A DNA stretch of 64,000 nucleotides from Epithemia pelagica (taxonomy: Eukaryota > Protista > Bacillariophyta): positions 2,418,001 through 2,482,000 of the forward strand of contig OX337242.1 of NCBI GenBank assembly GCA_946965045.2, written 5' to 3'. Below the pieces are notes generated by a model, which did no database searches, was not told the DNA's origin, and saw only the letters and a list, made by a program, of their open reading frames with translations. The position numbers and the translations under genes are program-made. Positions 2,833 to 30,626 of this stretch are shown one piece after another (the first letter of the stretch is position 1; every line of letters starts with the position of its first letter).

Positions 2833-2846
2833 TTTGTACTTGTCAC

Positions 2847-3075
2847 GATGCGCTTTTTGTGTAGCGTCTTTGTTTCAACAACAACAACAACAAGGGTAGT
2901 CGAGGAAGCGCTTTAATTGTAGCGTCTTTGAGACAACCTTGTGTACTTGTCTAAACAGTAAAAAGTGTGCGCTGAATTGTGTAGCGTCTTTGGTTTGGTC
3001 CTGAACTCTGGTGGTAACAAAACAACAACCAAATCGAAGGAATACACTACGATGCGCTTTATGTGTAGCGTCTTG
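2847..3075. repeat. Four copies of a ~25-bp GCGCTTT..TGTAGCGTCTT motif
   Basis: Copies at about 2847, 2908, 2968 and 3052. They share the TTGTAGCGT core of the adjacent modular repeat. Confidence 0.7.
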
Positions 3076-3178
3076 TTCGTTGTGATCCAACAATCGGTGC
3101 CAGAATTTGCTACTCCAAAACCAGGGGTTGGTTGGTTGTCCAAGCAATCTCGCGACAAGAATAGAACAGAAGCAACTG

Positions 3179-4266
3179 GCTACCACCGTGTCACACTGCT
3201 TGCTTTGGGTCTGTTCTATTCAAGTCGGAGTATCACGAGGACAGGAGGGTTCTTGATAAACAATCTAACAGCAGATAGCCCGAAACCGCTTTAATTGTAA
3301 TAGCGTGATTGGAATGAAGGACAGAGCTGAGTGAAACAAGCAACAATCAGACAGATGCCCCAAGCCGCTTTAATTGTAGCGTGGTGATTGGAATGGCAGA
3401 GCTGCAAGATAGTGCAAGTGTCAAAGATAGGACAAATGTCGACAATATTTCGAATGCTCTGGTGGTCGTTCTTCTTCTTGGGTTCCTCTTCTTCTTGTTT
3501 TCCTGTTGTAGCGGTTTTGGAGTGAAGGTCGTGGTTGAAAGGAAGCAAGCAACAATCAGACAGATGCCCCAAGCCGCTTTAGTTGTAGCGTGATTGGAAT
3601 GGCAGAGCTGCAAGATAGTGCAAGTGTCAATGTCTCGAATGCTCTGGCCGTGCTTGAGTTCCTCTTCCTCTTCTTCTGGTGCAGCGGTTTTGGAGTGAAG
3701 TGTTGTAGCGGTTTTGGAGTGAAGGTCGTGGTTGAAAGGAAGCAAGCAACAATCAGACAGATGCCCCAAGCCGCTTTAGTTGTAGCGTGATTGGAATGGC
3801 AGAGCTGCAAGATAGTGTAAGTGTCAATGTCTCGAATGCTCTGGCCGTGCTTGAGTTCCTCTTCCTCTTCTTCTGGTGCAGCGGTTTGGAGTGAAGGTGG
3901 CTGAAGAGGAAGCAAGCAACAAAAAGGTGGCTGAAAAGGAACCAAGCAACAATCAGACAGATGCCCCAAGCCGCTTTAATTGTAGCGTGATTGGAATGGC
4001 AGAGCTGTTAGGTTGGTGAAAGAAGTTGGATAGGTGAAAGGATTGAAAAGGGAATCTCGGCAGAGAGAAAGCAAGCAACAAAAAGGTGGCTGAAAAGGAA
4101 CCAAGAAACAATCAGACAGATGCCCCAAGCCGCTTTAATTGTAGCGTGATTGGAATGGCAGAGCTGTTAGGTTGATGAAAGAAGCTGGATAGATAATGGG
4201 ATTGAACAGGGGAATCTCGATAGCGTTGGGTGATCGATTGCTGTTGTTGCTGCTGCTGCTGTTGTT
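3179..4266 (+). repeat. Left arm of a long inverted repeat built from modular ~160-210 bp units
   Basis: The core GATGCCCCAAGCCGCTTT(A)ATTGTAGCGTGATTGGAATGGCAGAGCTG recurs at about 3354, 3563, 3760, 3960 and 4119, with a degenerate copy near 3275. Confidence 0.85.
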
Positions 4267-4832
4267 GTTTGTTGTGGTGTGTTGGGTGGAGGTGGAGGGA
4301 GATGAATGAGCATCGATTCTGGTGGTCGTTGATTGTTGAATGACTAGTATTCTAAGTTGTTCGGTTTTGTTAGATGGATCAGAGTGTCGAGTTGGTAATC
4401 CCCGCGGTTTGGGTGATTGGGAAGGAGGATCCATCTGAGACATTCTTTGGGACATCCATGTGCGTCAGTCTTTCTGGCAGCTGCTGTGTGATGTGGTGGG
4501 AGTGGAAATTCGTGATTCAAAGGTGAGGGGACAGACGCTTGCGCATGAGGGTTGCGTCATGCGCGTCTCGGGGGGGTCGAGCGCGCCAGATAGTTGTAGT
4601 GCGCATTATCGGAGTGTGGCGCGCGTTATTCGTGGTTTGATCGCGGGCTTGTGCGCATTAAAATTGTTGCATGCGCGTGATAGTCAGCTCGATCTCTAGA
4701 ACTAGCTAGAGAAATGTGCATTGTTCGACCTAGATTTGCAGATTTAGTTGGGAAAGCAGGATTATAGTTAAAAACTGCGCATATAAAAATAAACTGCGCA
4801 TAAAAAATTTTAATTCGGTGAATTTTTTCTAG

Positions 4833-5512
4833 AAATTCGCTTTTGGGGGTGGAAATCAAGCGCCAGGGCCCATTTCCCTCCTTAGATGATAAAGACGGCA
4901 TTCCAGTGTTCTTCCTCAGCAGAGAGCACGTCAAACATGCTGGCCTGTCCGATATCGCCGCAGAGCTTCTTGCAACGGAAACTTGCGGCAAAGAAGGTAA
5001 GTTTGATTGTTGTTCATTGCTGATTGTTACTCCCCCTTTCTCACGACATGCACTCTGCTGCCAGGCAATGAGCCTGGCAACAACCCTGGCAACAAGCCCA
5101 AGATTGGGATCAAGAAGGAGGAGGAAGTCGAGAACATGGCTCTGGAGTCCTATGTTACCCCGAAGAAAGCAGCTTCTTCCCTGAAGCTGGCGTCTGAAGA
5201 AGCTTCTTCCCCAAAGGTGGAGTCTCGAGCTTTTGCTTTGACCCCCTCCCAGAAGCATGCCTTCCAACATCAGAACAGGTGAAGGAAAGAGGAGCGACAG
5301 ACCCTCGCAAGATTTTGAATGAATCGCTGGCAGTTGGAGAAAACATCCCCTCCTCACCTCCGTTGTTCTTTAACAATCCATCCCGTGCTTACCGGACATC
5401 CATCGATTCGTATGCCGATGATGGATTTCTTGAAACCCAAGAAGACTTCATCGGTACGCAGCACAACAGTTTTGGCCCCGAGTACTTGGATCATGAGGAC
5501 GAGGCGTACTAG
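4833..5512 (+). pseudogene. Small spliced ORF of unknown function inside the inverted-repeat spacer, with a frameshift near 5279
   Basis: An intron at 4997-5064 (GTAAGT...CTGCCAG) joins CGKE-G|NEPGNNPG in frame. A low-complexity acidic tail continues in another frame. The start was not located. Confidence 0.3.
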
Positions 5513-5584
5513 ATATCTACTGATGGACGTTTTAGATATCCTTAATCACTAAATATGAATCTATTTGTCATCATGGTAGTACTA

Positions 5585-6459
5585 CAACAGCAGCAACAAC
5601 AACAACAATCGATCACCCAACGCAATCGAGATTCCCCTTTTCAATCCTTTTACCTCTCCAGCTTCTTTCACAAACCTAACAGCTCTGCCATTCCAATCAC
5701 GATACAATTAAAGCGGCTTGGGGCATCTGATTGATTGTTGCTTGCTTCCTTTCAGCCACCTTCACTCCAAAACCGCTGCAACAGAAGAACAAGAAGAAGA
5801 GCAACTCAAGAATGGCCAGAGCATTCGAGACATTGACACTTGACCTATCTTACAGCTCTGCCATTCCAATCACGATACAATTAAAGCGGCTTGGGGCATC
5901 TGATTGATTGTTGCTTGCTTCCTGTCAGCCTCCTTCATTTCCAAACTGCTACAACAGAAGAACTGCAAGAAGAAGAGGAAGAACTCAATCAAGAACGACC
6001 AGAGCATTCGAAACATTGATTCTTGGTGTCCTTTCTTTCAGCTCCTCTGTCATTCCAATCACGCTATAATTAAAGCGGCTTGGGGCATCTGTCTGATTGT
6101 TGCTTGCTTCCTGTCAGCCTCCTCCACTTCCTCCAAACCGATACAACAGAAGAACTGCAAGAAGAAGCGGAAGAACTCAATCAAGAACAACCAGAGCATT
6201 TGAAAACACTTGTCCCATCTTTCAGCTCTGCCATTCCAATCACGCTATAATTAAAGTGGCTTGGGGCATCTGTCTGATTGTTGCTTGCTTCCTGTCAGTT
6301 CTCCTCTCGATTCCAACCACGCTACTACAATTAAAGCGGTTTCGGTGGCACCTGTTTGAGTATTACAAGGAAGACTTCTCCTCAAGAACCCTCCTGCCCT
6401 CGTGATACTCCGGCTTGAATAGAACAGACCCAAAGCAAGCAGTGTGACACGGTGGTAGC
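5585..6459 (-). repeat. Right arm of the long inverted repeat (reverse complement of 3179-4266, one unit fewer)
   Basis: GCGGCTTGGGGCATC cores at about 5713, 5886, 6075 and 6256. The outer end (6385-6459) is the reverse complement of 3179-3255, and the inner end matches 4200-4266. Confidence 0.85.
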
Positions 6460-7212
6460 TAGCAGAACTCTCATTGAGAATTCAAAAGGGTAATAGGTAG
6501 TTGGGTAAAAGGCTCGCTGAGCCAACAATCGATCACCAACCGATACAACAATCCTCCACGGGTCAGAGAAGAGTTGCAAGTCGAAGTCTGCCGTGGCTGG
6601 AGGCAGTTGGTCCACTAATAAGAGGTTAGTCTTAAGATGTGATGAAAGGTGATATTATTGATTGTGAGATGATTACTAACTAAGGTGTTTGATGAAGGTC
6701 GAGGTCCTGGCTCTTGTATACGGCCATGGATCTGGTGTGATAGGTCCTCAAATGGTTGGAGTAGACCTGCATTGTTGTATTGAAAGTATATGCAGTTGTA
6801 TATCATATACCAATGCCAACAGATCTTGCTTTGTTGTGATATAGGTAGTTTTCTTGGCGCGTTGTTGATTGCATTCTTGGAATTGTGGGAATGGAAATAT
6901 GGTCTCGCGTGATCGTGATTCGTGCTTTGATTACTTAGGTCGTTGAGGTAAGTCGTGGAGGTGCTCACTAGGATCGTGATTGCGCGCGCTTGAGAATATT
7001 GGGCGCGCACGTGATGGGCCATAGTCAATATCCGAGCGGTCGCCGATAGCGCGTACATTGCGAGCATGCCTTGGCCAAAATTATAGGTCCGCGAGCATGC
7101 CGTCATTCTTTTCTCACTTTTACACAAATGTCATTGGATGCCATAAAATACTAGCATCAGTCGATGTGTTGTAGATTCCACCACCACCTAGTTAAAGGTG
7201 AGAATCCTAACA
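6460..7212 (-). repeat. 3' LTR of element A (753 bp, TG...TA)
   Basis: Starts TGTTAGGATTCTCACC directly after the PPT and is nearly identical to 12794-13526. Confidence 0.92.
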
Positions 7213-10200
7213 CTCCCCACAATTCGTCGAGTGAGGATTGTTATTTTCCTTGTCATGCTTCTGAACGTTTCCTCCCCAGAAGAATATGATCTTGAACATG
7301 GTCCATACTTTCGAGAATTTCCAATGCTTGTTGAGAATGTCTCCTGGATGTTCTCATAGTCATCATTCTTGAGTTGGTAGGTCTTGTCGATGCCCTTTGA
7401 GCTATGCTCTCCAGGTGCCTTCTTCATCCAAACATTGGGATCTGCTTTGGTTGGTGACAAATCCATATCAATTGGGATGTCAAAGAAACAGTCACGCCGA
7501 CACGCTCCTGAAGATTTTAATCCCTTTGAGGCCTTGTGCGTAATCAAGATGTGACCTGATTCCTTGAGTTCTTGTCTTGCAACTATCAAGATCTTCTCTC
7601 CAGATAAAGCTTCCGGGTCGTGTGCAATTCCAACTTTTGCTCCCCATATATACATATCATTGAGAATCCCAAGACAGGTGGTTGTATGGAAGTTGTGAAT
7701 GGAAGTAGTACACAAAAAGATTGCCTCAACCGGTTCTTTGGTAAAAGCCTTGTCTGTGATGAGAAGTGCTGGGCGACTATCATCATGTTTTACAAGATGG
7801 ATTCGAATCTTGTTCTTGTGATACTCTTCTGGTGATGCATTTATCATTTCCCTTCTCTTGAACTGAGCTTGAACGCAATCCTTGATTTTTGTGAGGGATT
7901 GGATCTGTGAAGCCTGAAAGAGCTCAACTTCAGTAGTGTCGTACCACTTTCTTTTACCATGTTGCTTGTCTAACAAAACAACTAATTCTTCATTTGTCAT
8001 TGAAACTTGAAAACCAAACTTGTACTTGATGGAACGACAGACTTGCTTGATTCTTGACTGCTGTTTGGCAGCTTGAACAAGACATTTACTGGTCTTGACA
8101 AAACGCTTGAGATGTTTCCATCCAAGTTCATTTAATAGATCATGTTTCTTGGCATAGGGATCATTTACCATGAGTGACAGAGGCTCATAGATCTCTCCAG
8201 TCTCCCAAACAACAAGTATCTTGAAGCGACTTCCTTTGTAGCCAGGACTGTTGCTACTACTTCTTGACGGTTCTTGATGTGTGACAACATTTCTGAATTG
8301 GGAAATGTCATCTTCAGTTGCCAGTGCTTGGATGTCCTGTTTAATGTATTCCATATGTTGACGGTATGAGATTATTTCGCCAATGCTGGAAATGGATTTG
8401 CAGAAAGTGTACTTGATACATTCTTCTTGCTTGAGAGCATCTTGTTCTAAATCAACGACGCGTCTGATAAGACATGGTTGTCGTTGCTCCCCATTATGTG
8501 GTTGTCGTTGCTCCCCATTTTCCTCTGGATCATAAACAAGGAAAGTTTGTCCAATAGTTTCATCATGTTTGATTGTTGGAATTTGCGTGGATAGATCTTC
8601 ACCTTTGCTACAAATGAAAACAATGTCAACTTGTTTGCCCTTGGGTTTACTTGGAAGCGACTCCTCCCCTGAAGAGGTATCCACACAAACGTGGCTGGGT
8701 AGCGGGGGTGCATCATGGAGAATGGCAGAGTAACAAAGGGTTTGAGTGTCCAGAGACAAAGTATCACCAATAGGAGGGGCAAAAACAAGCCAGTAGCCAA
8801 GTGTCGTGACAAAAGAGGGAGGGTAGGGACGGTGGGAGAGGGCATATGATTCGGTAAAGTAGGGGGCCTTGTCCCAGATAAGGAAGAAAAGTGGGTGGGT
8901 AATGCCGGGTGGGCGACCATTGAGGATCTCAAGAGGGATATGGCCCGAAACGGTCACGACGTATGTTGTCCTCTTAACGGTCTGATAACGGTTCTCAGCC
9001 ATGTTCTGATCTTGGAGGTATGGTTTGGAACAGTATTCTCCAAGGAGGGATGTGAAGAAGGAAGGCGTATCAGGTCCATGATCATAAGGTAAATCCAAGA
9101 GAAGGTTGAGGTTACAGACAACACGATTGGTATACTTCCCAAAAGCATCATTCGGATTGCCATCATTTTCAACAGTCCTCGAAGAAGGTGCTGTATCTTG
9201 CATGGGATCAAGATGCCAATGATTAAAGCCAGTCACTTGATTGTTGCCGGAGAAAGTAGACATGCGAGAAAGCAGATGTCGAGATATCTGAACTTTCTGT
9301 TTACAGTTGTTGTTCTCGAGACAATCATTGAGGGTGGATGTTGCCTTGGTATTGGACATCAAATGAGTAAGATCAGATAGATTATCTTGATGGTTTTGGG
9401 AATCATCTTGAATCATGTTGTCAATCCGTGTACCACCAGGGTCAGGATCAGGTTCCGGATCAATGTCAAGAGTATGTGTCTGTTCCTTCCATGCAGTTGT
9501 TGTTGATGCATTCTGGGTAGACTTGTTGTACGCAATGATTACTTGACGACTATTGTCAGTGAATTTATTCCACAGATCTCTTGGAAGACTGATCTTTGGA
9601 AGCGAAGATGAATCCTTGGTCTTCATATTAGTTCTCTTAATCCTGTGGTGCATTTCTTTGGGTGATGGATCGTTGATATCAAAATCTTGATCATACTGGA
9701 AGTCATGTTGCTTGGTATGCTTACGTCGGTTAGACTTTGGTGATCGAGTTGCTTGGTCATGATTATATGCGGCATCGAGGAGAAGACGGAAATATGATCG
9801 ATAACAAAGTGTCTTTGCACCAGACAAGATGTTGACTTGTCGTAAATCAGGTACCTTTTCAACAGCTTTCATCAGGAAGGCCATCCTAGTGGAGTGGCAA
9901 GGAATGTGATCAAACATTGATACCAGATTGTCGAGGAGATAGAACTGGTGTTGAAAGTGTAGAAGAAACTGGTAGGTTGTGCCGTGCCATGAATCATCGA
10001 GACAAAGATTGGAGATGTAGTTGTTAAGACGTAGCACCTCTCTTTTTGCTAAACGAAATGACGAAATCCAACCGCCTTGGTTCAGGCAAAGCTTGGTGAA
10101 GTCTGCATTGATTCTCCAATGATCGTAATTGGCCTTGGTGAGGTTCAACCAGGTAGAACGGGATATATCACACTGCTGCAGGGTTGAGGTTTGTTCTCGT

Positions 10201-10505: not shown

Positions 10506-10661
10506 GGTAGTATATGGTTGGTCCGTGTTTATCTAATGTGTGGTGTGATAAGAACCCGGATGTACCACGTGTGTGCCACGTATGTAAGTACCCGGATGTG
10601 TGTTGTGCTGGGAACCCGGATGTGCGGAACTCGGTTTGTTGTGGAAACTACTCAAAGTTAC

Positions 10662-12640
10662 TTATCCTTGGTCACTTCCGGACTCGTTGCGGTGATCGAG
10701 TTGAACCGGGGAGTCAGGAATAATGGTAGCTTCCTTGTCTTGCTCGTAGTCCTCAGCAAAGTACTGGTCAGGTGAGTATTGGGAAGGTAGTTGCACGAAG
10801 TCCTGGTCCAGCTTGAGGTCCTGGAATAGGAGAGGGTCGGTTACCCCCAAGCGCCGGGTGAGTTTTGAATCCCGCCTGAGTCGGAGAAAATATGCATTCG
10901 TGTTCTCACCCCCATGGCGCGTCCTCCAAATTTGGCGATTTCTCGAGGTTGATACAAATCCATTTTCACCTCCACAGTTCCACCGTGGACCCAACCGAGT
11001 GAGGTCCAGTGCATCGGCAATTGGAGCTGCTACAGCGCACCTGCTTGCAGGCCTGTTTTATAGCCACTACTGAAGGGCCTCGGCTATTGAACTCCCACCG
11101 AAACATTGCTGTTGTGTCTGCCAGACTGCCACACTCAAGCACCATTTCCACCATCATGACTGGAAGCAACGACGTGTCTATAAACCCACAAGACAACCAC
11201 ATTTCCCTCCACCAACCCTCTTCGCATTCGCCCACCACTCCCTCTTTCCAATTGCCGCTATGGGAACGGGCCATCCTCCTTTCATACCACTACAAGGTTG
11301 GAATACACTCATTTCAACTCTGCCACAACAAATTTATCACAACAATCCACCAGATGTGGTCGTTACCTATCTGTTGGGTGCGACTGTATTAATCCTGATG
11401 GATCTGCATTTGTTTTTAACTTGGACCGTCCCCTGTTGCAATTGGCCTTGATCTCAGGCCTCGTGTTGCATCCCTGTTCGGCTTGGCGAAAGTTGCAACT
11501 CTTGATCAATACCCCGAAATCACGTGCCAATTAGTTATTCTTGCCTCTGAAGGAACAACAACTTGTATTAACCTTTTTGGGAGAAGACTACAAGGAGGAA
11601 GAGGAAGCTACCAACAAAGCAATGAAGAGCTCCAAATTGGTTTCAAGTACGTTGTGTCGGATTTCCACCATGGCCGTCGCATTTTCCGATCGATTAAAGA
11701 GTTTGAGTCGCAATGAAGAGGAAAAGAATTTCTAGTAAGCGATCACCACCAATGGAGGACAAGTACCGGCACTGGAAACGACCAATCATGGTTCCTCAAC
11801 CATATCCCAAATTGTGGCTGATTATTGTGTACTCTTTGTCTTCGTTTTGCATCCACTTTCATACCAAGCCAAGATAGAAAAACAACAATAAGACAAATAA
11901 TGAACCATTTGCTTGGTTTTTGCCCAGCCACTACCGGTAGCTCCTCTTGGAATTGGCAATTGTAATAAGTTGTTTTGCTGTCTGATTGTTGCATGATCAC
12001 AGATGCTGATTATTATGTTGTTTCATTCGCTGATTGTTGCGTATCCTTCGCTGTTGTCTTTGCTAGGATCATGGCCATGTTTCTGCCATGAAGCAGACTG
12101 TGGTTGATTGTCATCAAGTCATTGTCTTTATCTCTGACTTCTCCTGACTCACCATCTGTCGATGCAGCCACATATGGTTGATTGTTGTGCTATTTTCGTC
12201 TTAGTCGTCTTCCTTCTTATGATTTATGTTGTACTCCTCTCGTACGGTTACACCCGCAACGGAAGAAGAGAAAGGAAACAGGGAAACACCGGGTTTGGGC
12301 GATGAATTGTTCTGTGAGACAGGAGTGAAAGTTTTGGCGATTTACCTCTCCCTTGAACCCTCTCCTGTGGATACCATCGATGCTCCAGAGTATCATCGCG
12401 CCCCGTAAGGTTCTCTTGGTGTGGTATGAGCGACACAGTGTCATTTGTGGGAAGACATGGACATGATGGAGATCGATTTGGGACCCCTACACCTTCACCA
12501 CCGTGATGACAGTGGGGAGATGCTTGGCATTTTGTATCAACACCGAGAGCTCAGGATCGCGCCATGGGGGTGAGTATACGAAAGCCCTTTTTAAGTGCGA
12601 CTCAATACTCGCCCGGCGCTTGGGGGTAGAGGGTCGGTGA
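10662..12640 (-). pseudogene. Degenerate, rearranged ORF0 homolog in the leader of element A
   Basis: PSTPKRR...DPE near 12640-12540 and LP..DQY..QDKEATIIP..SDQG-stop at about 10800-10662 match ORF0 of B and C. The stop context AGTGACCAAG(G/A)ATAAGTAACTTT is shared with B. Confidence 0.5.
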
Positions 12641-14775: not shown

Positions 14776-15533
14776 TGTTAGGATTCTCACCGAAAACTAG
14801 GTGGCGAAACCTACAACTCATCGAATGATGCTAGTATTTTATGGCATCCGATGACATTTTCCTAAAAGTGAGAAAAGAATGTCGGCATGCTCGCGAAACT
14901 ATAAATTTGGCCACGGCATGCTCGCATTGCACGCGTTATCGGCGACCGCTTGGATATTAACTATGGCCCAACAAGTGCGCGCCCAAAACTATCAAGTGCG
15001 CGCCTCTACTATCCGAGTACGCGCATCCACGATTCGACCTAACGGTCTATGTAATCAAAGCACGAATCACGATCACGCGAGACCATATCTCTGTTCCCAC
15101 AAATCCAAGAATGCAAACAGCAACGCGCCCAGGACAAGACTTATACCACGACAAAGCAAGAGCTGTTGCATCCCATACATGTTATCCATCACCCTATACA
15201 TTCAATATACACCAATGCCGGTCTACTCCAACCAGTGAGGACCTATCACACCAGATCCATGGCCGTATACAAGAGCCAGGACTTCGGCACCATCAACCAC
15301 CTTAGTTAGTAATCGTCTCACAATCATTAATATCACCATTTTAACACTCATCTTAAGACTAACCTCTTATCAGTGGACCGACTGCCCCCACCCACGGCGG
15401 ACTTCGACTTGCAACTCTTCTCTGACCCGTGGAGGATTGTTGTATCGGTTGGTGATTCGATTGTCGGCTCAGCGAGCCTTTTACCTATCCTACCTATCTG
15501 TCTAACCCCCGTTGAATCGAGAGAAGTTTATCA
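14776..15533 (+). repeat. 5' LTR of element B (758 bp)
   Basis: Matches 22195-22242 plus 30632-31341, with about six substitutions seen by eye. Confidence 0.95.
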
Positions 15534-15547
15534 GATTAACAGTCTCA
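15534..15547 (+). promoter_or_regulatory. Primer-binding site of element B (GATTAACAGTCTCA)
   Basis: Lies directly after the LTR-terminal CA and is identical to the PBS of C. Confidence 0.8.
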
Positions 15548-15571: not shown

Positions 15572-16327
15572 ATGTCTCACGACGATTCCAACCTCTCTAT
15601 TCGACACATCTTTCATTCCTTCCAACAAAGCGGGGAGGAACTCCATCCACCCGTGTCCCATCCGGGCGAGCCTTTGATTGAAACTCCGAAACAGACCCCG
15701 ACTCAGGCCAGTGCTCCGAATCCCTTCCAGACACCGGACCAAGTGGTCCAGCCTCCTTCGATTCCGACTCACCCTTCGACTCCGCCTCGCCGTTTGAACC
15801 CTACTCGCACCCGACGTACGAGCCGTCTTCTTACTGCGCATATCCGACACTTCCGCGAGCCGACTGAGTCGACTACCGACCCCGACGTGATCCGTTCCAC
15901 AACCGAACGCGAGATCGATTTCCAGTCCGTCCAACCCGTGACTGACATTGAGGACATCCAACGACTTCTCGACCTCTTGTACCAGTGCTCGAGACGCCGT
16001 TTCATTGTCCAAGCCCTGTTGGGCAACCCTGTGGAACCCATCCGTATTCGATTCATCTCCTTTGAACGTCCAACCAACTACTTCCACACCATCTGGATCG
16101 TCAACTCGACGACGAATCCGCTACCTACCCCGACTACTCGTCTCGACGAGTACGTCTCCTTTGTTCACGAGATCCATCTCTGCCAGGATTTCCGTGCGAC
16201 TATCTACCCTCTCTTCACTCAACACGTGAACCACTTGTTGGAAGACGACGACGTTGAAGAACTAGCCACTACAGTGACCGATTCCGCATCTCGTCTTCAG
16301 TACCGAGCCGAAAGTGACCAAGAATAA
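15572..16327 (+). CDS. Extra ORF (ORF0, 251 aa) between the PBS and gag of element B; function unknown
   Basis: ATG at 15572. It aligns without gaps to ORF0 of C at 86/156 identities by hand count. Confidence 0.8.
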   Translation: MSHDDSNLSIRHIFHSFQQSGEELHPPVSHPGEPLIETPKQTPTQASAPNPFQTPDQVVQPPSIPTHPSTPPRRLNPTRTRRTSRLLTAHIRHFREPTESTTDPDVIRSTTEREIDFQSVQPVTDIEDIQRLLDLLYQCSRRRFIVQALLGNPVEPIRIRFISFERPTNYFHTIWIVNSTTNPLPTPTTRLDEYVSFVHEIHLCQDFRATIYPLFTQHVNHLLEDDDVEELATTVTDSASRLQYRAESDQE

Positions 16328-16519
16328 GTAACTTTACGTAGTTTCTACACCAAACCAGACACAAAACCGAGTTCCGCACATCCGGGTTCCAAGCACATCA
16401 CACAACCGGGTACCTACATACGTGTCACATCCGGGTTCTTTTCACACCGGTTAAATAAAATTTTCGCAAGGATATCACGCTACACACTGTGATAACAGCT
16501 GAACCATACAAGTACTATC

Positions 16520-19500
16520 ATGGAAGCGACACCTCCCAAGACACCGTTTACTCCTCCTGAGGACAAGTCAAGTCATATAACCAACCAAGATCTCTTCGAC
16601 CATATAACTAAAGGCATCTTTGGTTGTAATGATGAACGAGCCCAATCACTTCAAAAGTGGATGCGACATCATGGTTTTGAACATATCCTTCATGTCCTCG
16701 ACCATGTTGCAACTGATCCCGAGGAGACACTCAAGGATCTCATGCAATACAAGGTTGGAAAACAAGTCAACGACCTACAGACAAGTACAAGATTACAACT
16801 CAAACTAATGGCATATTGGTTACTACAACAACGGCAACTCCAACATGGAAAACTACCCCGTGCTACATGGATGAACCTCACGAGGGACCAATATGACGAT
16901 TGGAGGATCAACACCGACTTTACCAAGTCTGGTATGAACCAAGACCCAGTTTCTCCTCTGAAATCACCTGCACACTCCGTATCATCCCGATCTCCCACTA
17001 CATCCTCTACAACATCTCAATCCATGTTAGATCTCTCTGCTTTCAAGAAAGGAACCAAAAGAGATGCAACAGCATTTGAATCATTCAAAGACGAACGATA
17101 CTTTGATTCGTTTTGGCGTGTATTCAAATCAACTGCGAAAGCACAAGGATTGTCGAATGTTCTTGATTTCAATTATAAGGTACCCAAGGATGACGGATGC
17201 GCAGAGTTACTTTTCCGAGAACAACAAGTCTTTGTCTATTCTGTACTTGTACGTATTATCCAAACCGACCAAGGAAGAGCATATGTTCGAGAACATGAAC
17301 ATGATGAAGATGCAAGAGCCGTCTTGGAGAAACTCCATGTTCTACACACTGAATCTGATCTAGCTAAGCGAGAAGTGTTACGCCTAACAAGCTACATTTC
17401 GAATCTTCGACTGGATGACTCTTGGCGTGGTACAACTCGTCAGTTTCTCCTACATTTTCAAGAACAGCTACGACTTCTGGATAACCTTGTACCACTGTCG
17501 GATCGTATCCATGACCATACAAGGATGACCTTCCTTATGCAAGCTGTTGAAAAGGTACCTGATTTAAGACGAGTCAAGATCTTGGATAACGTTGTCAACA
17601 CAAAATCTGGAGCCAAGTCTCTCTGTTATCAATCATATTTCCGCCTGCTTCTTGATGCTGCTTTTGACCATGACCAAGCTACCCGAACTTCTGCGTCTAA
17701 CCGCCGTCGTCATGTAAAGCAACATGAATTTCAGTTGGATGAACCTTTTGAACCAGTGGAGCCCCCTGACTACCAGATCAACAACACGAATATCCAATCC
17801 GAAAAGTCCCCAACTTCGTCGAAAATCAGCCTTCCAAGAGATGTATGGTTTAAACTCTCTGAAGAGGATCGGCAAATCATTGTCGACTTCAATAAATCCG
17901 TCCAAGATTCCCCGACAACTCCACGCAAGGTCCAAACACATCCTCTTGACATTGATCCTGAACCGGACCCTGATCCTGATGCCAACAACATTGGTGATAC
18001 CCATCAAGATGCACCAGAACAAGATCCATTTGATACATCCTCTGATCTGGTTACCCAGTTCGTATACCAGGCTATTGCATCAACAGATATCAATCATCCA
18101 GCATCTGACCTCAGCAACATCTTGTCAACTTCTACGACAAAGTCAAGTCCTAAAGTCAAGTTCAAGTCTTCTGCCGATCACAAGCAAAAGGTTCATATGT
18201 CACGATATCTATTCTCCCGCAAATCCACCTTTTCTGGTAATCAACTCATCGATCGAGGTGCCAATGGAGGCCTTGCAGGATCTGACATGCGTATCCTTGC
18301 CAAAACCGGACGTCATATTACCATCGTAGGTATTGACAATCATGAATTGACTGGCCTTCCAGTTGTTACCTGTGCTGCCAAGTTTGATACAAGTGATGGA
18401 CCCATTATTGGTATCTTCAATGAGTATGCCCACTATGGAAAGGGTTTATCTATCCATGCCCCAGCGCAATTTGAACATTTCGGCCTATCTGTCGACGAAC
18501 GATCCGTCAAGGTTGATGGCAAACAACGCATTACTACCCTTGATGGACGTGCATTGCCCTTATGAATCAAGGATGGCCTTGCATACATTCAATCTCTGGG
18601 AATCCCTTCTGATGACGATATGGATAAATGTCCGCATATTGTGTTCACTTCACCCCATATCTGGGATCCTTCTGTACTTGACCATACCCATCCAGACCCC
18701 CATCAAGACCCTGCACCGAACTGGACATCTGTGGAGACTGATGGTAGTATGGAAACGTACCCCTATGACCAATATGGGGAGTATACCGATCGCGTTGTAT
18801 GCACTTTGAATCTCCTCCTTGATCTCCCATATGATCATGGCCCCGATACACCTTCCTTCTTTTCCATCTATGCTGATCAAGATGGCAACGACCCCACACT
18901 TCATGCGTCTGTCCACAAACTCTACAAGGAACAATACGACTGGAAGAAATTTCGCCCTTTCTTTGGGTGGCAATCGGAAGACGTAATCGCCGATACGTTC
19001 AAGCATACAACTCGTCATGGACACATTTCCTTTGACCAGGATACCTTGAAGAAACACTTTAAGGCCCGGAATCCTATCCTTAACCTACCACGACGGCATG
19101 AACCCGTTGCCACTGACTCCATCTTCTCCGACACCCCGGCTGTTAACCATGGTGGCAAGATTGCTCAGATTTTTGTTGGTCGTGATACTTTGGTTACTGA
19201 CATTTATGGTATCAAGTCTACCAAGCAATTCGTCAATACCCTCCAGGATAACATTCGTACACGTGGTGTCATGGAGACTTTGATCAGTGATGGTGGTTCG
19301 TCACTTATTTCCCACAAGGTCAAGGATATTCTTCGCACCCTTCTGATTGGTGAATACCGTTCCGAGCCCTATCATCAACACCAGAACAAAGCTGAGAACC
19401 GCTACCAGACCGTTAAGCGTATGACCAATGCTATCATGAATGCCTCTGGTTGCCCTGCTTCTGCATGGTTACTTTGTTTAGAATATGTGTGTGACCTCCT

Positions 19501-22200
19501 CAATCACACTTCCTCTCCCACCCACTCTGGCCGCACCCCTCTTGAGGCTCTTACCGGTACCCCACCCGACATTACCCATCTCCTTTTCTTTCCTTTCTGG
19601 GATGAGGTCTACTATCGTGTCGACCCTTCTGAACCTACCTCCGGTTCTTACCCTTCGTCTCCCGACGAGAAGATTGGCCACTGGGTTGGTTTTGCCCACA
19701 ATGTTGGTGATGCCTTTACTTGGAAGATCCTCACTGCCGACAACGTCATCATCTACCGTTCCGCTGTCCGTCGCGTTGCCTCCACTACCCCCAACCTTCG
19801 TGTGGATATCTCTTCAGGGGAGGAGTCGCCGCATAAACCCACTGACAAGCAAGGTGACACTGTCTTTATTCGCAGCAGAAGTGAAGACCCATCCACACCT
19901 ATGCCAACAATTGACTACGACGATTTAGTTGGACGCACATTCCTTTGTGACACTGAAGAGAATGGGGAGCGCCACCGAGCACGAGTAATCAAACGAGTTG
20001 TCGACCTGGAACAAGATGCAACCAAACAAGAAGATCGACTCAAATATATCTTTCGCAAGTCTAACTCCAATGTTGATGAGATGATCTCCTACAACCAGCT
20101 CATGGAATACATTGAAAGGGATAATCAAGCCCAAATGACAGGGGATAGTCTCTTCCGATTCAGAGACGTTATTGCACACCAAGGACCTTTGAACTCAAGC
20201 GACCCAGACTATAAAGGGAGTAAATATAATGTCCTTGTTGATTGGGAGACTGGGGAGACGACATACCAACCTCTATCTCTTATTGCAAATGATGACCCCA
20301 TCACAGTCGCCATCTATGCCAAGAAAAATGGTTTGCTGGATCTACCTGGATGGAAACATCTCAAGCGATACGTCAAGACAAGCAAAAGACTCATTCGAGC
20401 AGCTAAACAATCCAGGATCAAACAAGTTCGTCGCTCTATCAAGTACAAGTTTGGTTTCCAAGTACCTCGCACCTATGAAGAAGCAGTGGAACTAGACAAG
20501 CAATTTGGGAACACGAAATGGCAAGACGCAACAGAATTGGAACTCTCACAGATCCAATCGTATAACACTTTCAAGGACCATGAAAAGCCAAGTTCATTAA
20601 TGGGAAATTGGCTAATGCACCAGAAGGATATCATAAGATAAGAGTACATCTGGTCTTTGATGTCAAGCATGACGGAAGGCACAAGGCACGACTTGTCGCA
20701 GATGGACATCTCACCAAGGAACCCGTTGAGACCATCTATTCAGGGGTTGTCTCCATTCGCAACCTTCGCATTGCCATATTTCTTGGAACCATGAACAACA
20801 TGGAAATATGGGGAGCAGATATTGGGAACGCATACCTAGAAGCATTGACAGGAGAGAAGATTTTCATCATTGCAGGACCAGAGTTCAAGGAGTTAGAAGG
20901 ACATATCTTGATCATCTACAAGGCATTATATGGTCTCAAATCCTCAGGTGCTCGCTGGCATGACAAACTGTTTGATGTTCTCATTGATATGGGATTTTCT
21001 CCAAGCAAGGCTGACCCTGATATTTGGATGAAGAAGGCTCCTGGAGAAGACTGTTATGAATATATCGCTGTCTATGTTGATGACTTAGCTATCGTTGCCA
21101 TGGACCCTGAAGCTGTCTGCAAGATCTTTACAGAAAAATACAACTTCAAACTCAAAGGAGTCGGACCTATTGAGTATCATTTGGGGTGTCGTTATACCAA
21201 AGATCCAGACGGTACACTTGTGTCTGACCCACGAAGGTACATCGAGAAGATGATGGATACCTATGAACGATTGTTCAATGAGAAACCCAAGAAAGCAAAG
21301 CCGCCAGTCATTGCTAACGATCATCCTGAACTCGATGACTCTGAGCTCTTAGATGAAGAAGGGACCCAGCATTTCCAGACTCTTATTGGACAACTGCAAT
21401 GGCTAATTACCATTGGCCGTTTTGATGTCTTTCCTGCTACCATGACTCTATCAAGGTTCAGAGCTGCTCCAAGGATTGGTCATTTGAAGCGAGCTAAACG
21501 CATCTATGGATACCTCATGTCATTTCCTGATGGGTCTATCAGATTCCGCACTGGGGAGCCAGATTTATCAGCTTTACCTATCCAAGAATACGATTGGAGT
21601 CGTACCGTATACATGGACGCCAAGGAACGTATCCCTGAGGACTGTCCAACCCCACTTGGGCGTTTTGTGACAACTATACATTATGTCGACGCAAATCTCA
21701 TGCATGATATGGTTACTGGGAAAGCAGTTACAGCCATCCTGCATTTTGTAAATGGTACACCCGTGGACTGGTACAGTAAGCGACAAGCCACAGTGGAAAC
21801 AGCCACGTATGGATCTGAATTTGTTGCCGCAAGGACTGCAGTTGATCAGATCACGGAGCTACGCCTTACACTCCGATACTTGGGAGTCCCTCTGCGAGAG
21901 AAGAGTTACATGTTTGGAGATAACCGCTCTGTCGTTATCAATAGCACCACACCACACTCAATCATCTCCAAGAGGCACCATCTCCTATCCTATCACCGAG
22001 TCCGTGAAGCTATCGCTGCAAAGTACGTCGAATTCTACTGGAAAGATGGAAAGACAAACCCAGCTGATATCCTCAGTAAACATTGGGAATTCGCCGCAGT
22101 TTGGCCCATGCTCAGATCTTTGTTATTCTGGAGAGGAAAAATCCAGGAAAGTGATGAGGGAATTGACAATCCTCATTCGACGAATTGTGGGGAGTGTTAG
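16520..22200 (+). pseudogene. gag-pol of element B, with an in-frame TGA (18563-18565) and a 1-bp deletion near 20583
   Basis: Motifs LIDRGANGG (PR), TDSIF/ISDGG/AENRY (INT), YVDDL (RT) and YVDAN/SEF/GDN (RNase H). The ORF pieces are colinear with C. Confidence 0.93.
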
Positions 22201-22242
22201 GATTCTCACCGAAAACTAGGTGGCGAAACCTACAACTCATCG
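22195..22242 (+). repeat. First 48 bp of the 3' LTR of B (interrupted by C)
   Basis: Identical to 14776-14823. Confidence 0.93.
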
Positions 22243-23025
22243 TGTTAGAATTCTCACCGTCTATGGTGGTTAGATTCTACATCTCATCGATTCCCCATGT
22301 CACATAGCCTCGTGCTATCGCATCATGCCCTCTAGCTTCGAGCTATGTTTCCTAGCTTCGCGCTATATCGACCTATATTTCTTCGCAAATCATGAAAAGT
22401 GAGAATAGATTGACGAACTCACTCTCAAGACTAAACTGGGTCGTGCGGTATTACAACGGACGTAAATTTGGCCGTTGCTCGGACATTATACTAACGCCCT
22501 AAGCGTACGCGCCCGAAATCATCGAGCGCGCCCAAGCGACATCCGAGCGCTATCGGCATCTATCCGACCCAACGGTCTAAGTATCCCAAGCACGACACAC
22601 GATCACGCGAGACCATATTTCCATTCCCACAATCTCCAAATTGTCAACAAGCTGCGCGCCATGAAAACAACTATGCCAACCCAAAGCAAGAGCTGTTGAC
22701 CCTGTATATGTTATCCGCCCACATATACATGTCATATACATCACATGAATCAACTCCAACTATTCCAAACCTGTTGCCGCCAAGAACCTATGACACATGA
22801 CCCTTGGCAGGACCGAACATTTCACGTAGACCTATTGTAGTAATCAACACACAATCTAACAATATCACCATTTATCACATCCTCTTTTGTGTCCCGACTA
22901 TCCTTCTGATAGACTTCGACTTGCTTGCTTCTCTGACCCTGAGAAGCTTGTATCGGTTGGTGACCTACCTGATTGTCTGCTCTACCGAGCATCAATGTCC
23001 CTACGATTCAGAAAGAATTGTAACA
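22243..23025 (+). repeat. 5' LTR of element C
   Basis: Runs TGTTAGAATTCTC...TTGTAACA and repeats at 29844-30626. Confidence 0.97.
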
Positions 23026-23039
23026 GATTAACAGTCTCA
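23026..23039 (+). promoter_or_regulatory. Primer-binding site of element C (GATTAACAGTCTCA)
   Basis: Lies directly after the LTR, and B and C diverge immediately after these 14 nt. Confidence 0.8.
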
Positions 23040-23061
23040 AAGCTTATTTCCTTGTGGTTTC

Positions 23062-23841
23062 ATGGATACTAACAAGATTATCACTCCTGTACGACAGATC
23101 TATCGAGCCAACCTGCATCCCGGGCAGCCCGATACCCTGGTGCAGCAGGAACTGGTGCCGACGCCGAAGGCAGCCAACACATCGGTCAACATCTCCGTCG
23201 ACAGTTCCAACAGCAACCCATTCGAGACTCCAACCCAGCCTCACGCTCCAATCCCTGCGCCGTTGCTTCGGCCCCCGAGTCCGCCTCGTCGGCTCGTCCC
23301 TTCTCGATCCCGTCGTACCACCCGGTTGATTGCTGATCATATCAAGTACTTCCGCCAACCAACTTGTTCGACCTTCGATCCCGAGATCATCCGTGGGGAG
23401 ACCCAGATCGAACGCCAGTTCCAATCGGTGACCCACATCGTCGACCAAGAAGACATTGACCGTCTGAACGACCAACTTCATCGTTCTCCGAGGCGTCGCC
23501 TCATCTTTGCCGCCCTCTCGGGCAACCCCATCCGTACTGTCCACCTCCGCTTCCTAACCTTCGAGCGCCCAACTGGATACTACAATACCATCCACGTCGT
23601 GAACGCGACGACTTGCCCTCTGCCTCCTAACGTTGTACGCCTAGATAACTACGTTGCCTACATCCACGAGGTCCATACCATCGAGGACCATCGTGCAACT
23701 ATCTACCCTTTGCGTACCGAGGTCGAGAACCACCTGGCTGAAGGTGATACCCCTTCTTCTGTTGCTTGTGCTGCCCCATCTGAGCCTGGAAGCGACTCTG
23801 ATCATTCGGAAGAGGGTGAGGATTCGGAGACCGAAGCTTAA
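23062..23841 (+). CDS. Extra ORF (ORF0, 259 aa) upstream of gag in element C; function unknown
   Basis: Homologous to ORF0 of B, with a Pro-rich N-terminus, a conserved core and an acidic tail. Confidence 0.82.
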   Translation: MDTNKIITPVRQIYRANLHPGQPDTLVQQELVPTPKAANTSVNISVDSSNSNPFETPTQPHAPIPAPLLRPPSPPRRLVPSRSRRTTRLIADHIKYFRQPTCSTFDPEIIRGETQIERQFQSVTHIVDQEDIDRLNDQLHRSPRRRLIFAALSGNPIRTVHLRFLTFERPTGYYNTIHVVNATTCPLPPNVVRLDNYVAYIHEVHTIEDHRATIYPLRTEVENHLAEGDTPSSVACAAPSEPGSDSDHSEEGEDSETEA

Positions 23842-24161
23842 TTACTCATAGTTAACTCCCGTCCTCTCAAAACCTTTCCAAGACTTAAACTCAACGCACA
23901 TCCGGGTACCCTTGGTCGCACAACACGTCACACATTCCCGTCAAATCGCGAAAATTCGGCGAAAATTTGTTGAAACTCGGCGAAAATTTGTCGAAATCAA
24001 CGGAAATTTCCAGGAGTCGCACATCACAACACACATCCGGGTATCACATACGTGGTACATACGTGGCACACGTGGTACATCCGGGTTCACATCACATCAC
24101 ACATTAAATAAACCACATCACACCGCACATTAAATAAACATCGAACCAACCAAATAACACC

Positions 24162-27100
24162 ATGGATCCTCAATCACCCAAGACACCTACGACTCCTAAG
24201 GGAGAAGATAACCAAGACAATGTCTCGGACACAGACCTATTCGACCACATCATATTTACTGTCTGCCAATTCTTCACCAAAGAAAGGGCCGACTACTTAA
24301 TGAAGTGGATGAAATACCATGGTTTTGAGAACATTACCCATGTTATCTCGTATATGCAAACTAATACCGAGGAATCCATGAAGGAACTGACACAATACAA
24401 GGTCAACAAACAGACACATGATCTACAAGGCCCCACAAGACAGCAGATCAAGCTCTTGGCTTATTGGGCCACATACAAGACCAATGAAATTCAAGACGAG
24501 CTATCCAATAGCGACTGGATGAACCTAACGAGGAAAGAGTTCAACACTTGGAGGATCAACACAGATTTCTCTAAGGGACCACCTAGCCAAGTCCCAGTCT
24601 CGCCAATGAAGTCACCGTCATCTGTGAAATCTGTCAGCACAGTTACTGCCGCATCCCAATCTCAACAAGACCTTACAGCATTCAGAAAGGGAACTAAGCG
24701 CGACGCAACTGCATATGAGGTATTCAAGGATGAACGATACTACGATTCATTCTGGCGCGTATTCAAGACTACAGCTAAGGCTCAAGGCCTATCCAACGTT
24801 CTGAATTTCAAATACACACCACCCCATGATGATGAGTATGCCGAAGAACTTTTTCAGGAGCAACAAGTATTTCTTTACTCCGTTCTTGTCCGTATCATTC
24901 AGACTGACCAAGGTCGAGCCTATGTACGTGAACATGAACATGATGAAGATGCGCGTGCCGTATTGCAGAAGTTACACTCTTTGCATACCGAATCTGACCT
25001 AGCAAAGCGAGAAGTCCTCCGCTTAACCAACTACATTTCCAATCTACGTCTTGACGACACATGGCGCGGAACAACACGTCAATTTCTTCTACACTTTCAA
25101 GAGCAGCTACGTTTGCTAGACAATTTAGTGACATTGTCTGATCGCATCCCTGATCATACCAGGATGACCTTCCTCATGCAAGCTGTAGAAAAGGTACCTG
25201 ATCTCCGCCGAGTCAAGATCTTGGATAATGTGGTGAACACCAAATCCGGTGCAAAATCCCTTTGCTATCAATCATACTTCCGTCTCCTTCTAGACGCAGC
25301 TTATGACCATGATCAAGCAACCCAGTCATCTGTTCATAGTCGCCGTCGACATGTCAAACAACATGAATCACTATATGGCCAAGATACAGATGCTGACATA
25401 ACCTCACAAGATGATATGGAGTATCATGTCCATAACACCACAGCGACATCTGAATCTCCATCCTCTTCGTCCAAGGTTAGTCTACCGCGTGACCTATGGT
25501 TCAAACTTTCTGAAGAAGATCGCAAGTTGATCATTGAGTATAACAAGATGATTCAAGCACCTTCATCAACAACACCGAGGAAAGTGCAAACACATGCCCT
25601 CGACATTGATCCGGAACCTGATCCTGACCCCAACCAAGTTGCATCTGATGACGACTCACCTGGCGTTGTCCCTGAGCATCCAGATGATTCAGATCCGGTT
25701 ACACAATTTATCAACCAAGCCATGACAACTGATATCAATCACCCGGCAACTGACCTGACTAGTGTTCTTTCTAACGCCAAGTCCAAGACGAGCAAGAAGG
25801 TTACTTTCAAAGCCAACATGCATAAACAAGCAGGACATGTTCCACGCTATCTGTTTTCCAGGAAATCTACTTTACCAGGGAATCAATTGATTGACCGTGG
25901 TGCTAATGGAGGACTTGCTGGTTCTGACATGCGCATCCTTTCTAAGACTGGCCGCCATATCACTATTGTGGGTATTGATAACCATGAACTTACTGGACTT
26001 CCTGTCGTCACATGTGCCGCAAAGTTTGAGACCAATGATGGACCTATTGTCGGCATCTTCAATGAATATGCTTATTATGGGAAGGGCTTATCTATCCATG
26101 CTCCTGGTCAATTCGAGCATTTCGGACTTGCTGTTGATGAACGATCTGTTAAAGTTGATGGTAAACAACGCATCACTACACTTGATGGTCGTGCCATACC
26201 CCTTCACATCAAGGATGGGTTAGCCTACATCCACTCCTTGGGTATCCCCAGCGACAATGACATGGATACCTTACCTCAGATCATCTTCACGTCACCCGAC
26301 ACATGGGATCCTGGTGTTCTGGACCATTCGTATTCTCCCACACCCTCTGACAATGATCCTGATTGGAAACACGTCAAGACTGATGGTAGTATGTCGAACC
26401 ATCCATATGACAACTATGGGGAGTACAATGATCGTGTTGTTTGTAACCTCAATCTCCTTTTGGATCTCCCATACGATCATGGACCTGACGATGCACCCTT
26501 CTTTTCTATCTATGCTGACGCAGAAGGTCATGATCCTACACTTCATGCCTCTGTCCACCGTCGTTACCAGGAAGCGTATGACTGGAAGAAGTTCCGTCCA
26601 TTCTTTGGTTGGCAATCTGAAGATGTTATTGCCGATACGTTCAAGCACACTACGCGTAATGGTAGCATTACTTTTGACCACGACACCCTCAAGAAACATT
26701 TCAAGGCTCGCAATCCGGTCCTTAATATACCTCGACGTCATGAACCCGTTGCTACTGACTCGGTTTTCTCCGACACCCCTGCTGTTGACCATGGCGGTAA
26801 AGTCGCACAAATCTTTGTTGGTCGAGATACTCTGGTTACTGATATCTATGGGATCAAGTCAACCAAACAGTTTGTCAATACTCTTCAGGATAACATCCGG
26901 TTTCGTGGTGCCATGGAGACTCTTATCAGTGATGGTGGTTCATCTCTCATCTCTCAAAAGGTCAAAGACATTCTTCGCACTTTGCTTATTGGGGAGTATC
27001 GATCTGAACCTTATCATCAACACCAGAATAAGGCTGAAAACCGTTACCAGACCGTTAAACGTATGACCAACGCTCTCATGAATGCCACTGGTTGCCCTGC

Positions 27101-29849: not shown

Positions 29850-30626
29850 AATTCTCACCGTCTATGGTGGTTAGATTCTACATCTCATCGATTCCCCATG
29901 TCACATAGCCTCGTGCTATTGCATCATGCCCTCTAGCTTCGAGCTATGTTTCCTAGCTTCGCGCTATATCGACCTATATTTCTTCGCAAATCATGAAAAG
30001 TGAGAATAGATTGACGAACTCACTCTCAAGACTAAACTGGGTCGTGCGGTATTACAACGGACGTAAATTTGGCCGTTGCTCGGACATTATACTAACGCCC
30101 TAAGCGTACGCGCCCGAAATCATCGAGCGCGCCCAAGCGACATCCGAGCGCTATCGGCATCTATCCGACCCAACGGTCTAAGTATCCCAAGCACGACACA
30201 CGATCACGCGAGACCATATTTCCATTCCCACAATCTCCAAATTGTCAACAAGCTGCGCGCCATGAAAACAACTATGCCAACCCAAAGCAAGAGCTGTTGA
30301 CCCTGTATATGTTATCCGCCCACATATACATGTCATATACATCACATGAATCAACTCCAACTATTCCAAACCTGTTGCCGCCAAGAACCTATGACACATG
30401 ACCCTTGGCAGGACCGAACATTTCACGTAGACCTATTGTAGTAATCAACACACAATCTAACAATATCACCATTTATCACATCCTCTTTTGTGTCCCGACT
30501 ATCCTTCTGATAGACTTCGACTTGCTTGCTTCTCTGACCCTGAGAAGCTTGTATCGGTTGGTGACCTACCTGATTGTCTGCTCTACCGAGCATCAATGTC
30601 CCTACGATTCAGAAAGAATTGTAACA
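29844..30626 (+). repeat. 3' LTR of element C
   Basis: Follows the GTGGGGAG PPT and matches 22243-23025. Confidence 0.97.

Follow-up and report, generated by a model that had tools for sequence, protein, structure and literature searches.

A probable accessory gene ahead of gag in Copia retrotransposons of the diatom Epithemia pelagica, with the layout of a leaky-scanned bicistronic RNA

The nested Copia elements and their copies

This analysis concerns an open reading frame (ORF), termed ORF0, that lies between the primer-binding site (PBS) and gag in a lineage of Ty1/Copia long terminal repeat (LTR) retrotransposons of the diatom Epithemia pelagica. The DNA analysed, referred to as the window, is a stretch of 64,000 nucleotides of the forward strand of contig OX337242.1 (assembly GCA_946965045.2, positions 2,418,001 to 2,482,000), and coordinates refer to it unless another locus is named. 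On the + strand it contains two nested Ty1/Copia elements, B and C, with C sitting within the 3′ LTR of B. A third element, A, lies on the − strand. The features of the locus are these:

14776 to 15533, + strand: 5′ LTR of element B, with TG..CA ends and the target-site duplication ACGAC; its last ATG is at 15259 and the final 274 nt have none
15534 to 15547, + strand: PBS GATTAACAGTCTCA, common to B, C, a further family D, the lineage with ORF-X (described below) and ORF-less relatives
15572 to 16327, + strand: ORF0 of B, 251 aa with an ATG start in the context ctttcgATGt; upstream, the frame stays open as far as a TTG at 15512
16328 to 16519, + strand: ORF0–gag spacer of B, ATG-free, with ACATCCGGGT at 16378 and 16427 and degenerate copies
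16520 to 22200, + strand: gag-pol of B, start context actatcATGg, broken into 16520–18565, 18620–20641 and 20608–22200
22244 to 23025, + strand: 5′ LTR of element C, identical to 29845–30626, with the target-site duplication CATCG
23062 to 23841, + strand: ORF0 of C, 259 aa, start context ggtttcATGg
23842 to 24161, + strand: ORF0–gag spacer of C, ATG-free, with ACATCCGGGT at 23898, 24033 and 24077
24162 to 29849, + strand: intact gag-pol of C, 1895 aa, start context aacaccATGg
10668 to 10817, − strand: C-terminal remnant of ORF0 in the non-autonomous element A, ~50 codons, 40% identical to residues 207–258 of the D protein

The 3′ LTR of B is split into 22195–22243 and approximately 30632–31341, and the B pair shows 6 mismatches in the 715 bases compared, while the two LTRs of C are 100% identical. 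Both elements have the LTR pair, the TG..CA ends and the 5-bp target-site duplication of an LTR retrotransposon. The PBS follows directly after the 5′ LTR, at 15534 in B and 23026 in C, and is complementary to the anticodon arm of a tRNA-Asn(GUU)-type molecule. ORF0 begins 36–38 nt past the LTR end in the two elements. A reading made earlier from the sequence only had placed a sense ORF of 250–260 aa between the PBS and the ATG of the polyprotein, and this is borne out for both. ORF0 is followed by a noncoding spacer of 192 nt in the B copy of the window and 320 nt in C, and the polyproteins start at 16520 and 24162, respectively. That of C is a single frame with the Ty1/Copia order of gag, protease (PR), integrase (IN) and reverse transcriptase (RT), having the capsid (CA) fold at residues 283–387, the DRGA protease motif at 578, rve at 899–952 and an RVT_2-type RT at 1365–1584. 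The polyprotein of B is split into three ORFs.

The genome from which the window is taken (60.5 Mb in 23 contigs) was searched in six frames with ORF0, and 150 of the 238 candidates were scored, all of them significant. It holds at least 150 copies of ORF0 in three families (B, C and D), together with the remnant in a fourth (A). Relative to B, the copies fall into identity classes of 96–100% (B), ~62% (D) and ~50% (C). The sequence-only reading had described two families; B and C do both carry ORF0, but the number of intact families is at least three, with the remnant in A in addition. Family D is represented in all polyprotein comparisons by an intact element (L032) that has ORF0 at 982–1761 and a polyprotein of 1888 aa at 1969–7635, between LTRs that are 7456 bp apart. 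The element looks recently active: its copies number more than 150, it has LTRs that are identical, and many of its polyproteins are intact.

Among 30 copies of B that were fetched, the spacer is 192 nt long in 7 (including that of the window), 314 nt in 16 and 334 nt in 5, and all variants are free of ATG. Some B copies have a gag that starts MDPQSPKT, and were suspected to be B/C recombinants; this was ruled out, as they resemble B over their whole length (98%), the difference being an indel in the spacer. Three C-type copies on contig C9 (2948749–2949393, 2990616–2991260 and 3032738–3033376) lie ~42 kb apart and have longer open frames of 313–366 aa; they are probably one segmental duplication. 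In the last of them (L034) ORF0 has lost its stop codon and reads on into the spacer, for a product of 303 aa.

Conservation of ORF0 and the nature of its product

The ORF0 proteins of B and C are 48% identical over 220 aa (BLASTP E = 5e-58). The best ungapped block of 156 aa, comprising residues 71–226 of B and 74–229 of C, has 86 identities, which reproduces exactly the count made in the sequence-only reading. Between families the proportion of synonymous differences is saturated (pS = 0.68–0.69) and that of nonsynonymous differences is far lower (pN = 0.26–0.41), so that ORF0 is under selection at the level of the protein. The values of omega calculated by NG86 are 0.30 for B–C, 0.17 for B–D and 0.31 for C–D (Fisher P from 1e-10 to 1e-24), and are rough because the synonymous distance (dS) is saturated. 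They are nevertheless not near 1, as the earlier suggestion of protein-level selection requires. Third codon positions vary most, with differences at positions 1, 2 and 3 numbering 113, 78 and 139 for B–C, and 72, 58 and 139 for B–D. Given this concentration and the saturation of pS, a constraint at the level of the RNA cannot explain the conservation. In an alignment of five ORF0 sequences from B, C and D, 75 columns are invariant.

ORF0 evolves ~1.5–2 times faster than the neighbouring coding sequence, with amino acid identity between families of 42–60%, compared with 68–72% for gag-PR. Within family B (29 copies) the pooled pN/pS is 0.42 for ORF0 and 0.23 for the first 380 codons of gag at the same loci. 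Internal stop codons are present in 5 of 150 ORF0 matches, against 8 of 150 for a gag segment of equal length. The sequence-only reading had pointed to the persistence of an intact ORF0 in B, whose pol is dead. This is uninformative, since from its length ~90% intact ORF0 would be expected given ~50% intact polyproteins of 1901 codons. ORF0 is thus a sense ORF outside gag-pol, conserved between three diverged families under purifying selection, and in being sense, extra and conserved in a lineage it resembles the additional ORFs (aORFs) of LTR retrotransposons as outlined in a review (PMC7264820). It is very probably a real, selected and lineage-restricted accessory gene of this Copia clade.

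The N-terminus of the ORF0 protein is rich in proline, serine, threonine and glutamine, and contains an invariant NPF and a PxxPxR-like motif. It is followed by an arginine-rich patch (RRLxPxRxRRTxRL) with a net charge of +6 to +8 (+8 over residues 71–95 of B), a conserved core of ~130 aa with mixed predicted helices and strands, and then an acidic tail. There is no internal methionine, and B has a single lysine. Lysine makes up 0.4–1.7% of ORF0 compared with 6.1–6.5% of the polyprotein; this is partly a consequence of the 35% C composition, from which 2.2% lysine would be expected.

No family had been recognized for this protein by eye, and the searches agree. Pfam gave noise only at E ≤ 10 (Prd1-P2, Gemini_AC4_5 and RAB3GAP2_N, all far under their cut-offs), a profile search of the PDB gave no match at E ≤ 10, and a feature search of the ESM Atlas gave no usable match. 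An exhaustive hmmsearch of 1.84 billion protein representatives returned six proteins, each a fragment or a variant of the B, C or D type. One that was traced is in an ENA assembly, and the matches of a word-based search are likewise all ENA-sourced. Nothing was therefore found in these four collections outside this type of genome, and by sequence comparison the ORF0 protein is an orphan.

The polyprotein itself was modelled with AF2 on the basis of 16 aligned N-termini of polyproteins, taken from this genome and from relatives. The model is confident in two parts, an N-terminal domain (residues 20–135) and an all-helical region (residues ~180–390) corresponding to the capsid. Its best Foldseek match is the capsid of Drosophila Copia, and VIA-align superimposes residues 283–387 on the C-terminal domain (CTD) of that capsid (8vvw_A) with Z = 11.3 and a root-mean-square deviation of 2.4 Å over 92 residues. 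The next matches are PEG10 (Z = 8.9) and the CA-CTD of Ty1 Gag (Z = 7.9). Since the polyprotein holds the Copia capsid fold, ORF0 is not gag. Alignment of the ORF0 profile with the gag N-terminal region by hhalign gave a probability of 0.17, and ORF0 matched none of the Pfam gag families at E ≤ 10; the expectation that ORF0 is not a subdomain of Gag is thus upheld. ORF0 and gag share a frame in B but not in C or D, and additional in-frame stop codons lie in the spacer. The polyproteins have no CCHC knuckle, and just a tiny basic patch lies between CA and DRGA. The extra N-terminal domain of Gag (24219–24566 in the window, residues 20–135 of C) is predicted with a pLDDT of ~80 as helices plus a β hairpin; it is conserved throughout the clade and no fold was assigned to it.

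The AUG-free leader and the expression of gag-pol

Between the end of the LTR and the ATG of gag, the start codon of ORF0 is the sole other ATG in any frame in B, C and D, a feature missed in the sequence-only reading. The ATG-free run that follows it is 945 nt long in B, 1097 nt in C and 984 nt in D; 5–12 ATGs would be expected over these runs from a first-order Markov model, and CAT occurs there 18–32 times. By comparison, each 950 nt of gag-pol of the same elements contains 15–38 ATGs. Nowhere else on the + strand of the window is there an ATG-free gap as long as the two ORF0 stretches, and none of the 30 B copies fetched has an ATG in this region. The last 195–310 nt of the LTRs also lack ATG, apart from a short upstream ORF (uORF) in C. 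The two start codons differ in context. That of ORF0 has U at −3 (B and C as listed above, gttttcATGt in D), and that of gag has A at −3 and G at +4 (gcaatcATGg in D).

A similar arrangement is found outside this genome. A second assembly (ERZ25042306), of another organism, contains a sister lineage of elements with the same LTR end and PBS, whose polyproteins are 33–40% identical in the gag region. In these elements (L036–L041) an ORF of 178–186 aa, termed ORF-X, lies 73 nt past the LTR end. In two intact elements (L036 and L040, with ORF-X of 178–179 aa) there are no ATGs between the start of ORF-X (cttttgATGc) and that of the polyprotein (caaaccATGt), and the spacer is 62 nt long; the ORF-X start again has U at −3 and the downstream start A at −3. 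ORF-X resembles ORF0 in its threonine-, serine- and proline-rich N-terminus, an RTRR patch, an acidic tail and poverty in lysine. No alignment of the two was obtained (best BLASTP E = 0.11, hhalign probability 0.1), and ORF-X as a query found no match in the genome of the window. At 90% identity ORF-X falls into 656 protein clusters, some of which comprise hundreds to ~1000 members, and the element family is massively amplified in that organism.

Other relatives are without such an ORF. L039, a more remote element found in a third assembly, shares the PBS, but its leader of ~820 nt, which is free of ATG, contains no ORF. A scan of metagenomes for the PBS gave mostly chance bacterial matches, and Copia relatives were present at 8 of the 79 loci analysed; one returned locus (L098), labelled as a contig of a human gut metagenome, was set aside. 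In three of the contigs (L100, L076 and L102) the same PBS is present and gag starts ~50 nt after it, while two others (L104 and L093) have no ORF of the size of ORF0 ahead of the capsid region. The Asn-type PBS, for which the sequence-only reading had suggested a test of co-occurrence, is present in B, C, D and the ORF-X lineage, and also in relatives that have no ORF. In a tree of the capsid region, the carriers of ORF0 (A–D) and of ORF-X form one clade (UFboot/SH-aLRT 93/92), with all ORF-less elements outside. The simplest reading of these sequences is that ORF0 and ORF-X go back to a single gain and then diverged fast; each may instead have been born independently in an AUG-free leader. 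An origin de novo is considered on two grounds, the long AUG-free leader of L039, which has no ORF, and the character of ORF0 itself, an orphan with a C-rich sequence and a disordered N-terminus.

An RNA on which a weak AUG is followed, with none intervening, by a strong one bears the signature of leaky scanning. The same layout characterizes the polycistronic RNA of rice tungro bacilliform virus (RTBV), in which ~900 nt are scanned through the AUG-free ORFs I and II (Futterer et al. 1997, reviewed in PMC5902531). As in that type of polycistron, the upstream ORF and the intercistronic region are here devoid of AUG, and a weaker upstream start precedes a better downstream one. From this layout the genomic RNA is likely to be bicistronic, with ORF0 as a first cistron that is initiated weakly and gag-pol as a second to which ribosomes gain access by leaky scanning. 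Most 40S subunits scanning from the cap would bypass the weak AUG of ORF0. They would then pass over ~1 kb of RNA that is rich in C, poor in G and devoid of AUG, and initiate at gag, so that the same unspliced RNA would yield little ORF0 protein and much Gag-Pol. Taken as one proposal, a real lineage-restricted accessory gene that is also the first cistron of an RNA with leaky-scanned gag-pol is the reading favoured on balance.

Several observations weigh against this reading. Of four more copies of C and D that were checked (L031–L034), L031 and L033 have one ATG each, although these presumably arose by mutation after insertion. When the codons of ORF0 were shuffled synonymously, no out-of-frame ATG was found in 1.2% of shuffles for B, 4.9% for C, 5.7% for D and 6.8% for ORF-X; the corresponding P values (0.012–0.068) are modest for each family, and the families are related. 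C alone has a uORF of 26 codons (22995–23072), which begins in U5 in a weak context, crosses the PBS and ends just past the ATG of ORF0. The spacer holds a G-box-like ACGTG and TTAAATAAA, and could instead contain an internal promoter. Finally, the sequencing runs found to contain this sequence are three (X1–X3, from one study), all with DNA-like Logan contigs and with no RNA run among them. Over 22244–28243 these contigs show fragmentation of the type caused by repeats only, with no splice-like joint around ORF0 or the spacer.

The same layout admits other explanations. ORF0 might serve mainly as a long regulatory uORF that throttles gag-pol and encodes a functionless peptide. Being upstream of gag-pol with a weak start it must affect the number of ribosomes that reach gag, no fold or homologue was found for its product, and at this position the ORF-X lineage has an ORF that does not align with it. 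Yet the amino acid sequence is conserved at the omega values given above while synonymous sites are saturated, with 75 invariant columns, and regulatory uORFs are normally short; throttling needs no 250 open codons in at least 150 copies. We regard this role as decidedly unlikely. ORF0 could also encode a real protein while gag-pol is expressed from a subgenomic or spliced RNA, by reinitiation, or from an internal ribosome entry site in the spacer. Drosophila copia expresses gag by splicing, and the spacers of A–D carry the ACATCCGGGT repeats, ACGTG and, 40–60 nt before the gag ATG, TTAAATAAA, any of which might belong to an internal promoter or entry element. Such routes require neither the absence of AUG in all three frames within ORF0 nor a weak context followed by a strong one, and the ORF-X lineage keeps the AUG-free layout with a spacer of 62 nt that has no such motif. 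There is also no evident conserved GT..AG pair, and the relation between the frames of ORF0 and gag differs between families, so that this explanation is rather improbable. The position of ORF0 is that of matrix-like or of leader and packaging sequences, and in B it shares the frame of gag, as would suit a split N-terminal domain of Gag, a fusion made by splicing or readthrough, or an RNA signal. But the polyprotein has its own well-predicted N-terminal domain and capsid, with the low hhalign probability given above, and the frames differ in C and D with more in-frame stops in the spacer; for an RNA signal, variation at third positions and saturated pS are the wrong pattern. Any of these three is very improbable.

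With leaky scanning of an accessory gene as the preferred reading, the role of its product can be addressed with less assurance. Gag here is without a zinc knuckle and has a tiny basic patch, a gap that a helper of RNA or particle could fill. From its sequence the ORF0 protein may be a nucleic-acid-binding or particle-associated helper of the element's own RNA or particle, although we hold this assignment to be doubtful. Against it stand the lack of any homologue or fold signal in the searches of Pfam, the PDB, the ESM Atlas and 1.84 billion proteins, and an AF2 model of ORF0 from the five-sequence alignment that is unusable (pLDDT 38, pTM 0.22). Prediction of a complex between the ORF0 core (residues 70–235 of C) and residues 1–400 of Gag scored 0.00 with an uncertain fold of the partner, and is not evidence either way. 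The main alternative to the helper is a role in interaction with the host or in counter-defence, as a silencing suppressor or an adaptor for trafficking or targeting. First cistrons that are reached or bypassed by leaky scanning include the P1 silencing suppressor of sobemoviruses, as outlined in PMC3791421, which provides a precedent. The invariant NPF is of the type of an EH-domain ligand and the PxxPxR-like motif of the SH3 class II type, both lying in a disordered N-terminus, and ORF0 is very poor in lysine and evolves faster than gag-PR. Such short motifs could be due to chance, however, the poverty in lysine is partly compositional, and the searches for a homologue or fold gave no support here either; this role is judged unlikely. 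A wider proposal is that this protist Copia clade evolved a virus-like bicistronic RNA with scanning of the RTBV type, whose fast-evolving accessory protein, possibly born de novo from the AUG-free leader, replaces a missing function of Gag or counters silencing. We advance it tentatively, as something short of an even chance.

Related systems and minor features

Among LTR retrotransposons with an extra gene, the Ogre elements of plants (Ty3/gypsy) have ORF1, a sense ORF between the 5′ LTR and gag that is conserved in the lineage. The two differ in that Ogre is a gypsy element of plants whereas ORF0 is found in Copia elements of a non-plant host, with no similarity in sequence. Some of the CoDi elements of diatoms are listed with an ‘ORF1’ upstream of a polyprotein ‘ORF2’ (Maumus et al. 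2009, PMC2806351). These are also diatom Copia elements with a separate ORF ahead of that of the polyprotein. In the elements described here the capsid fold lies inside the polyprotein and ORF0 is additional; this probably sets them apart from the CoDi elements of that paper. The CERV protein of Cer1, an LTR retrotransposon of Caenorhabditis elegans, is neither Gag nor Pol and acts on the element's own genomic RNA, as summarized in PMC10309623. It is a possible functional analogue of the arginine-rich ORF0, although Cer1 is a Ty3/gypsy element and nothing in sequence or structure links the two.

The likeness to RTBV and the badnaviruses lies in the order of the parts: accessory ORF or ORFs precede the capsid–polymerase ORF on one reverse-transcribed RNA, with no internal AUG and a weak or moderate upstream start, and leaky scanning, here as a proposal, gives access to the downstream ORF. 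The system here is a Ty1/Copia element of a protist with a single upstream ORF rather than two; the start is AUG and not AUU, no shunt leader is evident in the ORF0 elements and there is no similarity in sequence. Extra ORFs of LTR retrotransposons and AUG-free polycistrons expressed by leaky scanning are each already known, and their combination here appears to be new; in the literature searched, no LTR retrotransposon with an AUG-free leaky-scanning design of this kind was found described. If the proposal is true, this is to our knowledge the first LTR retrotransposon with an RTBV-type leaky-scanning strategy. The possession of an extra gene by an LTR retrotransposon is a rare step toward the complexity of a virus, and most described cases come from plants and animals. 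The sequence signature predicts two proteins from one unspliced RNA, and both mechanism and function could be tested in an algal group that can be transformed. The series formed by ORF-less relatives, the AUG-free leader and the bearers of an ORF offers a system for studying the gain of a gene by a mobile element. In annotation, hundreds of calls of ORF0 as an orphan gene of the host are to be expected in each genome, and the same applies to ORF-X.

The 10-mer ACATCCGGGT occurs eight times in the window against 0.12 expected, and every copy lies in the ORF0–gag spacers of A, B and C. The three of element A (10554–10623, minus strand) are just upstream of its polyprotein ATG at 10505. The spacer of D (L032, 1762–1968) also has three copies, and ACATCCGGGT is often preceded by ACGTG(G/T); the 62-nt spacer of the ORF-X lineage has none. 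Allowing G–U pairs, UCCGGG is self-complementary, and ACATCCGGGT may thus be a candidate signal for dimerization or packaging, or an element for protein binding or a promoter.

Two of the sequencing runs (X1 and X3) have DNA contigs in which the C LTR, at its end (23025), is joined back to the start of an LTR (22244) with one extra T. The depth of this junction is ~75–90, compared with >10,000 for words internal to the element, and it could be either genomic, from tandem LTRs or a solo LTR, or of the 2-LTR-circle type.

One of the D copies (L031) has an insertion of 4.7 kb (1799–6530) right behind the stop codon of ORF0, encoding a piggyBac-type transposase of 1150 aa (PF13843, E = 6e-44). A short N-terminal motif of this transposase seems, by eye, to recur in a 479-aa ORF on the minus strand of the window (32668–34107). 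The latter has no Pfam match, and lies within a 7.5-kb unit (31364–39312) that is flanked by direct repeats of ~450 bp.

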